64,000 bases of DNA from Dimorphilus gyrociliatus (GCA_904063045.1 CAJFCJ010000009.1:476942-540941), one strand, 5' to 3'; shown: positions 22,696 to 46,054, numbered from the stretch's first letter. Notes: a model not told the origin generated them from the letters alone. Program-made: numbers and translations.

Positions 22696-25600
22696 ATGGC
22701 GGAAGCTCATAGTGCAGTAGCGTTTTCGTTCTCTGTTACACCGGAGGGTGTTGACGTTAACGTAAATCACGAAGCTCTCAGAGCCGTTTGGATCAGCGGT
22801 GTACGATCTTGGAAAAAAAAGACGGCTACATTCATGGTATGTTGTCAATAAATTTCAATAACAAATGTAAACAATACACAACATATAATAACCAATAATA
22901 TACCTTAAGAATCACGTTCATAATGGGGTTTACCCAGCCTCCCCGGCTTCGTGGCTGGTAACGAGTGGAGCGTTTGTGGGGCTGCACTATGCAGGATTGA
23001 AACAAATATGTAAAGTTGTCGACTATGTTTCGCAACTTCCCGGATTCAACTTGATTAAAACTCATGAAACTAATAAAAAGATTGTGGCATGTCTTGCCTT
23101 TTCTACGGGTGTTTGGCTAGTTGGCATAGCAACTCTTCGATACACTCTAAAATTAATGTTCTGCTACAAAGGTTGGATGTATGAACCTCATGGAAAAATG
23201 TCGGTGGCAACAAAAATTTGGCTGTTAGGAGTCAAAGTTCTTGTAAACCGAAGACCACTATTATACAGTTATCAGGGATCGCTACCGAGTCTTCCTATTC
23301 CCTCAATTAATGATACTATGAAACGATATTTGCGTTCTGTTAGACCGCTTCTGAATGATACTCAATACGCTCGTATGGAACGGTTGGTTGAAGAATTTAG
23401 GAGAGGAGATGGACCAAGGTTTCAGCGCTACCTTATTCTTAAATCCTGGTGGGCTTCAAACTACGTATCTGATTGGTGGGAAGAATATGTTTATCTTAGA
23501 GGAAGATCACCAATCATGGTTAATTCTAATTTTTATGGTCTTGATGCTATTATGATCCATCCCACTAACATTCAAATAGCAAGAGCAGCCAATGCTATCT
23601 ATGCAATGCTTATGTTTAGACGACAAATGGATAAAGAATTGATCAAACCGATAATGTTGAATGGAACCATTCCTTTGTGTTCTGCACAATACGAGAGGCA
23701 GTTCAACACTACAAGAATTCCTGGCGAAGAAAGTGATAAGCTTGTGCACTATAAAAGCTCAAAACATATCGTCGTTTATCATAAAGGTCGTTACTTTAAA
23801 GTATACATTTACTTTAAGGGAGTTCTCCTACTACCAAGACAAATTGAACAAATGCTCGAAAAAATCATTCTTGATGAAAGTGAACCAGTAAAGGGTGAAG
23901 AAAGATTAGCCGCAATGACAGCAGGTGATAGAATTCCATGGGCAAAAGCTAGAGTAGAGCATTTTGCGAAAGGGGTAAACAAAACTTCTTTAGAAGCTAT
24001 TGAAAAATCTGCATTCGTTGTCGTATTGGACGATGAAGAACATGACTACGACGAAGAAGATCCTACAAAATTAAACAATTTTGGAAAGTCTATGCTGCAT
24101 GGCAAAGGTTACGATAGATGGTTCGACAAATCATTTACGTTGGTAATCTGCAGAAATGGAAGAGTAAGATGATTATTTTTAAAATAAACATCCTTATAAA
24201 ATGTAAATGATTCTTTTTCTCATTTAGATGGGATTCAACGCCGAACATTCTTGGTATGTCATTAAAAAAATGATTACTAATCTAATATTTAAATAATTTT
24301 TATATATAATTATTGTGTATATATATATATATATATATACTGTATATATACATATATTTTTTTTATAAATATGCTAATGTAAACTAAAAGGGCTGATGCT
24401 CCAATAATGGCGCATTTGTGGGAGCATACTTTAATGGAAGATACAGTTAAGATCGGGTACGATTATATAATATTAAATGCAGTGTTAAAAAAAACTGTGT
24501 TTCTCTGCACATCTTTTTTTATTAATTTTCACTGCCTCTACTAAGCACGATTAAAAATGTACAAGAAAGAAGAACTTTGCGGAAAAGAAGTCTATATAAA
24601 CGATTTTTAATCATTCTTATATGTCTTTTGATTTTCTTATCTGTTTTTACTGATTTATTTATTTACTCTTTCATCGGATTGCACAGGGCCGACGCTCCAA
24701 TAATGGGGCATTTGTGGGAAACCACTATAGCCGATGAAGCATCTCTCGGGTATAAACATCTTTATTAACGATTCCTATTTTAAAAGAAAGGAATAATTCT
24801 ATTACTTATTTTTCTAAGCTTGCTTCTCTATTTCTTTTTCCTGTTTTAATATTCCTTTAAAGTAAATTCAAATTTATTGTTATCCATTTTCACCTTGCCC
24901 TCCCCCCTCATATTTATCAATTTATTAGCCTGATTAAATGATAAACATATATATATATATAAATAGATATACTGCTGACGGCCATACTCGTGGAGAATTA
25001 CCATTCAATGCTCCAAATCCGATTCGTTTGCAATGGGATCTTGATGATGAGGTTACATAATATTATAAAATATTAATTACGTAATAAATAAATGATTCTT
25101 TTTTGCTAAAACAGTGTTGTAAAGTTGTTGATCAGCAGCTGGCAATCGCAAAAGCTTTAATAGAGGATGTTGATTTAAATCTATTAAAACATGATGCATT
25201 CGGAAAAGGATTTATCAAAACCTGTAAAATGAGTCCTGATGCGTTTATTCAAATGGCCTTGCAACTGGCCTATTATAGAGTAAGATTTATTCAAATTTTT
25301 AATTCAAAGTTCTTTTTCTATTAAGAAAATTTATTATGAAATTCTATTAGGATGCAGGAAAGTTTTGTTTAACATACGAAGCTTCCATGACAAGACTTTT
25401 TAGAGAAGGTAGAACTGAAACTGTTCGCTCTTGTACAATCGAATCTGCTGAATTTGTTAAAGCAATGATGGACTCCAATGTTTCCGTAAGAGAAATTAAG
25501 CAACACTATATGTCATTTGTGCTTTATCTTTTCCTATGTTTTCTGTATGTAGAGAGACGATAAAGTAAAGTTGTTTAGAAAGGCGACTGATAGACATCAA

Positions 25601-26111
25601 ATGGGTTATAAAGACGCCATGTCCGGTAAAGGAATAGACAGACATCTATTCTGTCTTTACGTTGTTTCCAAATATTTGGGTATTGAAAGTGCATTCTTGA
25701 AGGAAGTTTTAAGTGAACCTTGGAGACTGTCAACAAGCCAAGTAAAAATTTCACTTTTTAAAATTAATAAACACGAAATACTTTTTAATATTTCATATCC
25801 TTCAGACTCCTCATCAGCAAACTGATAAATTGGATTTAGTTAGAAATCCAGAATTTATTTCAGCAGGTGGAGGTTTCGGACCAGTAGCCGATGATGGTTA
25901 TGGAGTATCGTATATAATTGCTGGAGAGGATGTAATATTCTTTCACATTTCGTGCAAAAAGTCCTGCAATGAAACTGTAAGTAAAACTTTTCAATTAGTA
26001 ATATTATTTATTAAATAATAAATATAAACTTTTTGCCGTTTTAAGGATCCAGAAAGATTTGCGAGAAACATAAAAAGAGCAATGTCGGATATGAAAAATC
26101 TTTTCGCATAA
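22696..26111 (+). CDS. CPT1: Carnitine O-palmitoyltransferase 1, multi-exon
   Basis: [14 protein letters not shown]-terminus; [21 protein letters not shown], catalytic [52 protein letters not shown]; all junctions GT-AG. Confidence 0.97.
24391..24456 (+). other. CPT1 alternative exon A (66 nt; [W][22 protein letters not shown])
   Basis: AG/GT-flanked, phase 2-2, homologous to exon B. Confidence 0.85.
24687..24749 (+). other. CPT1 alternative exon B (63 nt; [W][21 protein letters not shown])
   Basis: AG/GT-flanked, phase 2-2, homologous to exon A. Confidence 0.85.
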
Positions 26112-44497: not shown

Positions 44498-46054
44498 ATG
44501 AGAGCCGCATCGAGACCCATTGCTGCGTCTGTTCAGGTAATTAATTACCTTTCTAAGATTTTTTTATTGAAAAATTGAGAAAAAATTGTCATTGACTTTC
44601 ATTCGGCTTATAAAAGTTCGTCCTCGAGTGACCCGTCCTTTATTTTCGCTCGGTTTTTATATTCGCGTTTCTCTTTTCTACAGAAAAGGTTATATGCCAC
44701 ACGTTTGGCTGAACATCAAGAGGCGTCGCGAGTTTCTCTTCCCAAGCAAAGTGCTCAGGTAGATTAATTTGAAATATGACACCAATGACATTGACAGAGA
44801 ATTTTTTTTTAGATAACACGTCTAAATAATGGAGCTTTGGTAACCTCCTTGGAAAATTACGCTCCAATAGCCCATATTTCCATTCTCTTTAAGGCTGGAA
44901 CACGTAATGAAAGCTATGAAAATTTGGGTGTTTGTCACGCTCTAAGGACAGGGGCTGCTCTTAGTACCCAAAATGTAACACAATTTGGCTTAACCAGAAA
45001 CTTGCAGCAACTAGGAGCCGATTTGACTTGCACAACCACTAGAGAACATGTTTGTTACTCACTCCAGGCTGACAGAGACAAATTAACACAAGCTTTTCAA
45101 TTCCTTGGTGAAGCAGCATTTATGCAGAACTTCAAGCGTTGGGAAGTGAAAGATCGCGTTCCCGATTATTTAAATTTGGATTTGGGCAGGCTAGATCTAG
45201 ATTACAATACACGTGTCATTGAATTGTTGCATACAGCAGCTTACAGAAGAACCTTAGCAAATTCCTTGTATATCGATAGGAATAGAATTTCGGGTATCAA
45301 TCATGAAATGATGACATCGTACGCAAAGGATATGTTTACTGCTGGGGACCTGATTGTTTCTGGAGTAGGAGTGGATCACAAAGATTTAGTAAAATTAACA
45401 CAGAGTATGAATGTAACTGGTACAGCAAAAAAACCTCAAGAGGCTGTATTTTATGGAGGTGAACAACGTGTTGACATCCCAGGGGAATTTACATTCGCCG
45501 CTCTAGCCACTAAATCTTCTAGTATAGGCGACAAGGAATACTTTGCAACTTTGGTTTTGCAAAGAATATTAGGTGTTGGACCTCATATGAAATATTCAAA
45601 TACCGGCAAATTGCAAGATGCGGCAAGCAAGGCAGCTAAATCTCCTGTCCAAGTCTCTAGTATGAACTTAGTCTATTCCGATAGCGGTTTATTCGGTGTA
45701 CAGGCTGTTGCAAAATCAGCAGATATTGCTTCTGTTCTTAAAGCAACTACAGAGCAGATTGGACAGGTTGCCTCTGGTTCCGTATCCGCCGAAGCTTTGG
45801 AAACAGCAAAGCGTAGTGTGAAATCTACCATGTGGATGGAGTTGGAGAGTAGTGCTGGCTTAGTACAAGATTTGGCATTGCAAGCCGCTTACAGGGGAGC
45901 CCTTATGGAACCAGCCGAGTTTGGTAAAGCAATCGATGAAGTAGATGCAAGCGCAGTAAAGAACGTCGCTGCTCAAATTTTCAAAGGAAAACCTGCGTTC
46001 GCAGCCGTTGGTAACTTGTCACAAGTACCATATCTTGACGAACTAAAATTATAA
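44498..46054 (+). CDS. UQCRC2: Cytochrome b-c1 complex core protein 2 (M16 peptidase-like), 3 exons
   Basis: Mitochondrial-presequence-like exons 1-2; KAGTRNESYENLGVCHALR, FKRWEV, YSDSGLFG, AVGNLSQVPYLDEL. Confidence 0.94.

Follow-up and report, generated by a model that had tools for sequence, protein, structure and literature searches.

In mitochondrial fatty-acid oxidation, the step which limits the rate and is controlled by malonyl-CoA is that of CPT1. The Drosophila gene, whd, is said to contain two alternative exons, 6A and 6B, reportedly described by Price et al. in 2010 in J Biol Chem, 285:7857. Here a comparable pair of exons, named A and B, is analyzed in CPT1 of Dimorphilus gyrociliatus, an annelid, within a stretch of 64,000 nucleotides (GCA_904063045.1, CAJFCJ010000009.1:476942-540941), indicated as the window; unless otherwise stated, positions are counted from its first letter. 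According to two reports on the fly gene, the enzymes containing 6A or 6B differ in activity and kinetics, and the 6A/6B ratio shifts on starvation via 9G8, Tnpo-SR (SR proteins) and PKA (PMC3793950, PMC10879661). A second described system is COQ-2 of helminths, annelids and molluscs where, in lophotrochozoans as well as in other invertebrates, homologous mutually exclusive exons at the active site reportedly switch the properties of the enzyme (PMC7434440); enzyme and pathway are different, and the case is an analogue only. In vertebrates, distinct CPT1 kinetics are obtained by gene duplication (CPT1A, CPT1B, CPT1C), in contrast to the exon duplication of Dimorphilus. In the literature found, CPT1 switching by alternative exons is published for insects only, in agreement with the preliminary description of this locus, where it was presented as an insect feature; elsewhere, gene duplicates are held to account for CPT1 diversity. 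This literature search returned no description of a CPT1 exon pair outside insects, nor of the isoform pairs of crabs, molluscs, Lineus and Watersipora considered below.

The two exons are localized on the + strand, at 24391..24456 (A: 66 nucleotides, 22 amino acids) and 24687..24749 (B: 63 nucleotides, 21 amino acids). Both are flanked by AG and GT and are in phase 2-2, as originally read from the DNA. They follow exon 3 (24228..24253, + strand, 26 nucleotides), which encodes MGFNAEHS plus a final TG, ends in phase 2, and holds the catalytic His, read directly within the NAEHSW motif; they precede the constitutive exon 5 (24967..25051, + strand), which starts with YTADGHT. In each of them, the first G completes a Trp codon, while the last GG is completed to Gly by base 24967, with which exon 5 begins: translation confirms that either exon joins exon 5 in frame, as had been proposed, and generates open proteins of 765 or 764 amino acids. 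A and B feature 13 identical residues and, in one stretch, 25 identical nucleotides out of 26; a tblastn comparison within the gene aligns them with an E value of about 3e-7, and no third copy is present within the window. Their acceptors, too, are as first described: that of A (...aaactaaaag) is weak and purine-rich, with 42% pyrimidine, while that of B (...ttgcacag) is 63% pyrimidine and ends in cag.

The segment encoded by either exon starts two positions past the catalytic His, and the two enzymes differ in these 21-22 residues alone. Both exons retain the invariant ADAP..HLWE start, bar one residue (Ala or Gly before His), and are divergent in the rest. A parallel of this Ala/Gly difference with vertebrate CPT1A and CPT1B was considered and dropped: some vertebrate CPT1A also carry Gly. 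We take the segment to correspond to mammalian CPT1A from Ala476-Asp477-Ala478-Pro479, just past His473; it presumably holds CPT1A residues to which a role in catalysis and in the sensitivity to malonyl-CoA is attributed, e.g. that of the P479L variant.

The evidence reported below gives strong grounds for regarding A and B as a true tandem-duplicated pair, alternatively used, one per mRNA, in the single protostome-type CPT1 of D. gyrociliatus, and as members of a cluster common to annelids, molluscs, brachiopods, nemerteans, bryozoans and, probably, arthropods. Each mRNA would take A or B, and direct the synthesis of the longer or of the shorter of the two CPT1 proteins. As in Drosophila whd, two homologous exons of ~21 codons, alternatively used, lie in tandem right after the catalytic His in a single CPT1 gene. 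Differences are also found: insect and crab first exons start with ADAA/GDAA..MSH, while both Dimorphilus exons start with ADAP. Kinetics and regulation are known in the fly, while the Dimorphilus pair is known from sequence and RNA contigs; by analogy with 6A/6B, its isoforms may be expected to have different affinities for acyl-CoA and to respond differently to malonyl-CoA, and the balance tips slightly towards their being two kinetic or regulatory CPT1 forms, as in Drosophila. The kind of pair is therefore not new as such, being known from insect 6A/6B, and databases list crustacean and mollusc isoforms: modest additions are the conservation throughout lophotrochozoans, the conserved order of the exons and, as described below, the stop formed at TG|A.

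Exon use was evaluated on RNA data consisting of assembled contigs, with depth per bin, and not of raw reads, from three public runs, indicated as X1, X2 and X3. Run X3 (2017) features contigs at least 99% identical to the gene, from which ten CPT1 introns are removed, and is therefore RNA-derived. The joint between exons 1 and 2 (22835/6 to 22909/10) is found in X1 and X3, and that between exons 2 and 3 (24163 to 24228) in X2 and X3; exon 2 is covered by one X3 contig, and X3 has every joint of the exons after exon 5, part of them being found in X1 and X2 as well. The X3 contig joining exons 2 and 3 stops 27 nucleotides into exon 3. Two X3 contigs begin ~25 nucleotides before the exon 3 end, one running into A, the other into B: the joint from exon 3 to A (24252/3 to 24390/1) has a depth of 607, that to B (24252/3 to 24686/7), by which A is skipped, a depth of 819. 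Counts of these junctions and of the A-B one had been suggested as a check in the preliminary description: no A to B joint is listed in X3, and the bin in the A-B intron has depth 0.

Bin depths, taken as a rough measure, are consistent with two separate branches. For exon A, a bin depth of 310.7, with a share of the bin of 0.50, implies a depth of about 607, equal to that of the A branch. For exon B, the corresponding values (431.5 and 0.48) imply about 897, to be compared with 819 for the B branch alone and 1426 for A plus B: the depth is near the former, and A-bearing mRNAs would therefore be mostly without B. In the X3 sample, the A and B forms stand at roughly 43:57, and the contig graph is shaped as expected for mutually exclusive exons. 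Mutually exclusive use, at first indicated only as probable, is thus supported, as the likely mode, by the two exon 3 branches, by the lack of an A to B joint and by a B depth fitting the B branch alone.

The other two runs are uninformative on exon choice: in X1, a coral metatranscriptome, an unspliced piece runs across exon B, and in X2, a marine metatranscriptome containing a ~95% relative, exon 3 runs into the intron. Contigs of X1 are at least 99% identical to the Dimorphilus gene; dinophilid worms are present in both samples. One X3 contig matches two stretches of 26 nucleotides alone, at 24100-24126 and 25232-25257, corresponding to GYDRWFD and SPDAFIQ, the acyltransferase motifs with the highest conservation, and has long unmatched flanks. 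The resulting CA..TG joint (24126 to 25232, with 1105 nucleotides skipped) was rejected as a CPT1 splice form, the contig being most likely the transcript of a paralogous acyltransferase.

Other CPT1 loci were read in genomes by searching for same-phase AG..GT exons after ..AEHSW|, the exon 3 end common to nine out of nine protostome loci. Pairs of AG..GT exons, 60-66 nucleotides long, in the same phase and 216-1471 nucleotides apart, are present in the annelids Capitella, Owenia and Lamellibrachia, the brachiopod Lingula, the nemertean Lineus, the bryozoan Watersipora (locus L009) and the crab Portunus. In each of the three annelids one copy is absent from the public annotation: the first in Capitella (L002:4250-4312) and Lamellibrachia (L004:16531-16596), the second in Owenia (L003:25864-25923). 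Overall, a pair matching in position and phase is featured by five annelids, a brachiopod, a nemertean, a bryozoan, molluscs and crustaceans; judged by this distribution, it is not a dinophilid novelty. The scan of annelid, mollusc and deuterostome loci, also suggested at the outset, thus found the pair in the first two groups, while in amphioxus the segment occurs once, in one exon with the catalytic His, HSW running into ADAP without an intron. Ten other representatives, identified as sponges, a ctenophore, protists, an orthonectid and a tick, yielded no information on isoforms.

Database isoforms differ in the same segment. For crabs (Scylla, Portunus, Eriocheir) and Chironomus, isoforms differ exactly here (ADAA.MSH.. 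vs ADAPIMGH..), and an isoform pair differing in this segment alone is present in Apis. RefSeq pairs differing here alone are reported for Lineus, Watersipora (three variants), Octopus, the chiton Liolophura, Saccostrea, three scallops and Haliotis; no RefSeq isoform pair at this segment is found in Branchiostoma, Tubulanus and Pomacea. The RefSeq isoforms of crabs, molluscs, Lineus and Watersipora resemble those of Dimorphilus in that differences are confined to this segment; these pairs are automatic annotations, and some models fuse both exons, wrongly or rarely. In Watersipora, the segment has yet another form, the third, in isoform X3 (protein P0476), which reads HSC-FDAPIFSQMWEEFIAQDLEHYG: cluster size therefore varies between phyla. 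Named CPT1s of many different phyla were obtained by a profile search in which lophotrochozoans were favoured.

The order of the two exons was compared in twelve species of known exon order, by swapping first and second labels within species (2048 permutations); the test treats species as independent, though they are related, and restriction to cross-phylum comparisons corrects this in part. When first exons are compared with first and second with second, the observed order is 5th of 2048 for overall similarity, and again 5th of 2048 in cross-phylum comparisons alone (25 of 2048 with soft gap costs). The best labelling is the observed order with Mercenaria alone flipped. Where the locus was read, a 22-amino-acid exon of the MAH..WEY/H/F type comes first, and one of the MGH..WE(V/T) type, mostly 21 amino acids long, second. 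Dimorphilus A is closest to the first exons of Capitella (AHLWEHTL in common), Owenia, Lingula and scallop; B is closest to the second exons of scallop and Lingula, and also resembles those of oyster and Lamellibrachia. By these comparisons, the exon order appears significantly consistent across lophotrochozoan phyla. Concerted evolution of the 5' halves was considered and rejected: within species, 21-30 of 34 nucleotides are identical, vs a cross-species mean of ~25, and identity is raised in Dimorphilus and Lingula alone.

According to the preliminary description, in an organism other than an insect the switch would be either much older, i.e. protostome-wide, or convergent. The host is an annelid, and therefore not an insect, and the pair is found in many lophotrochozoan phyla: this part holds. 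The lophotrochozoan and the insect and crustacean pairs might be independent duplications of the same exon, their likeness to 6A/6B being convergent, an explanation which we regard as somewhat doubtful. It fits with the order test of arthropods vs lophotrochozoans alone, where the observed order is 185 of 2048 (332 of 2048 with soft gaps); since this is not significant, descent of both sets of pairs from one duplication, protostome-wide, is probable rather than shown. Arthropod first exons, moreover, feature DAA..MSH, partly matched by Capitella (DAA) and chiton (DAA) alone, exon A of Dimorphilus is without the arthropod DAA..S signature, and cluster size and order vary, given the third variant of Watersipora and the apparently inverted order of Mercenaria. 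Yet the crab and all the lophotrochozoans examined agree in position, in phase (TG|G...GG|A), in lengths of 60-66 nucleotides and in the TG|A formed on double skipping; a PIMGH-type exon is the second one in crab, Timema, Dimorphilus, scallop, Lamellibrachia and Lineus; and the twenty variable residues contain too little signal to reject homology.

Common descent with arthropods is favoured by the shared position, phase and length, and by the second exon, B having PIMGH in common with its arthropod counterpart, in a segment too short for proof. A further step is to trace not only the two exons, but also their order and the stop at TG|A, to the last common protostome ancestor (>500 million years), as the ancestral protostome route to two kinetically different CPT1 enzymes: for this proposal, arguments on the two sides seem evenly balanced. 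If it is true, the exon pair fills the role of the vertebrate gene duplicates CPT1A/B. That an annelid has this switch, as does every sampled lophotrochozoan phylum, would place it among the older conserved active-site exon switches, and makes CPT1 a clear illustration of two interchangeable solutions, the duplication of an exon and that of a gene. The pair also flags mis-annotated CPT1 models, where the exons are fused or one is missing.

Selection on the two exons was evaluated by comparison with a related dinophilid, represented by a Logan contig (L001); at the protein level, its CPT1 and UQCRC2 are 94% and 86% identical, respectively, to those of the window. L001 has both exons, with intact AG and GT. 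Nucleotide identity is 92% for exon A and 87% for exon B, with ratios of nonsynonymous to synonymous differences (pN/pS) of 0.06 and 0.04; the flanking constitutive exons are 81–84% identical, with a pN/pS of 0.13 for exon 5, and the CPT1 introns 44–54%. These values indicate that both exons are kept under purifying selection. They bear on the possibility that one of the two is cryptic, or a duplicate in decay, its inclusion being functionless splicing noise, in favour of which are the poor acceptor of A and the examination of one transcriptome alone: low pN/pS (0.06 or less) in both exons next to poorly conserved introns, similar branch depths (607 vs 819) and the retention of both exon types across phyla make it very improbable.

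Within the introns around the pair, a number of elements are conserved in the relative, all given on the + strand. The A-B intron contains an element at 24490..24511, which can form a stem with the exon A 3' end, and ATTTTCACTGCCT at 24525..24537. Upstream of exon B, TTTTACTGAT and TTACTCTTTC (24645..24672) are, because of the yUnAy consensus, a candidate branch point (24645-24654) and pyrimidine tract. Immediately 3' of exon B, GTATAAACATCTT (24750..24763) comprises thirteen intron bases identical in both species, and TCTAAGCTTGCTTC is conserved at 24813..24826, downstream of exon B.

The sole pairing candidate involving an intron is formed by the exon A 3' end (24436-24448) with 24493-24506, in the first of these elements, ~40 nucleotides downstream, and encloses the A donor. 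The 8-base-pair core of this hairpin is kept in the relative via two one-sided changes, and the hairpin is part of the minimum free energy fold of both species, with z-scores of -1.75 and -0.30. Together with the weak A acceptor, it is a candidate block on double inclusion. The acceptor is kept as ...tttaaaaag in the related dinophilid and, because of the hairpin and of this conserved poor acceptor, it may be speculated that A is the regulated exon. A weak first acceptor as a general feature of the cluster was rejected, being specific to dinophilids. RNAalifold, run on the two species, gave no convincing docking/selector pairing, and a GCAGTG/CACTGC pairing in the A-B intron was discarded, since it is not kept in the relative. 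Exon-to-exon duplexes of 9 base pairs are also predicted, between GAUGCUCCA (A, 24395-24403) and UGGGGCAUU (B, 24704-24712), and between UGGGGCAUU and AAUGCUCCA (exon 5, 25007-25015). Both persist in the relative, and there the second is fully Watson-Crick, owing to a synonymous U-to-C change in exon 5; these AUGCUCC/GGGGCAU pairings fall in the coding motifs DAP, MGH and NAP, and may be a coincidence.

The constitutive inclusion of both exons, in a CPT1 with a duplicated segment of 21–22 residues, would be in frame and is mirrored by some public models of other species, but is extremely improbable, since the joint from exon 3 to B skips A at a depth of 819, no A to B joint is listed, the depth of B does not comprise that of the A branch, and the active site would probably be perturbed by a segment duplicated right after the catalytic His.

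Besides the arthropod order test and the missing DAA..S signature, a few observations weigh against the explanation proposed here for A and B. The RNA support is given by contigs of one run, depth being a rough measure; the junction sides are of 25 nucleotides only, as expected at a graph branch; the joints of A and of B to exon 5 are not listed, because 24935-24974, containing the TA repeat at the acceptor, is masked. A plus B is also in frame, and double inclusion is permitted by frame, by the length of the A-B intron (230 nucleotides) and by the type of splice sites (all U2-like). The z-scores of the hairpin are weak, so that the mechanism of exclusivity is a candidate only. Finally, public models with both exons in tandem are available for Lymnaea, Biomphalaria (X2), Lingula, Mercenaria, Ylistrum, Octopus (X1) and the insect Timema; these fused-exon models may be either annotation artefacts or real.

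When both exons are skipped, the TG of exon 3 is joined to the first base of exon 5, an A, generating TGA at the junction. This base (24967) is A in nine out of nine protostome loci (the window, L001–L005 and L007–L009) and G in amphioxus; as third position of a Gly codon, it is free to vary. Its conservation may reflect selection for a stop disabling double-skipped mRNAs, which would be truncated or degraded. A splice-site context effect is an alternative explanation for the conserved A.

The CPT1 gene is composed of 11 coding exons on the + strand (22696-26111), separated by introns of 63–230 nucleotides, all GT-AG: with such short introns, it offers a compact model for the exclusivity of an in-frame exon pair. 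Exon 1 (22696..22836, + strand) contains the start codon and the N-terminal regulatory domain (Pfam CPT_N, PF16484, E 2.4e-24). Exon 2 (22910..24163, + strand, 418 amino acids) encodes hydrophobic segments and the first half of the acyltransferase domain (Carn_acyltransf, PF00755, E 4.4e-90); its best representative match is a crab CPT1, 54% identical. The hydrophobic stretches are visible by eye in the translation, between CPT_N and the catalytic domain. The remaining exons, on the + strand at 25115-25279, 25351-25485, 25553-25741, 25806-25976 and 26046-26111, also match Pfam Carn_acyltransf, and the last includes the stop codon.

In a maximum-likelihood tree, the Dimorphilus protein is localized among the protostome CPT1s, in a clade with a support of 98/96, whose sister group comprises amphioxus and the vertebrate CPT1A/B/C. 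Its PDB relatives, CrAT, COT and CPT2, match the catalytic domain only, and no CPT1 catalytic domain is found among PDB entries. By domain content and tree position, the gene is an animal CPT1 orthologue, and not CPT2, CrAT, COT or ChAT.

An Rfam scan of the whole window gave zero matches. Between 20591 and 31027, the window is syntenic with L001: a zinc-finger gene, CPT1, purine nucleoside phosphorylase (PNP) and TRIM-NHL follow in the same order. UQCRC2, a neighbouring single-exon gene at 44813-46051, is 100% identical to DgyrCDS7275 of D. gyrociliatus, an annelid of the family Dinophilidae; the UQCRC2 of the relative is found on a contig from the same run as L001.

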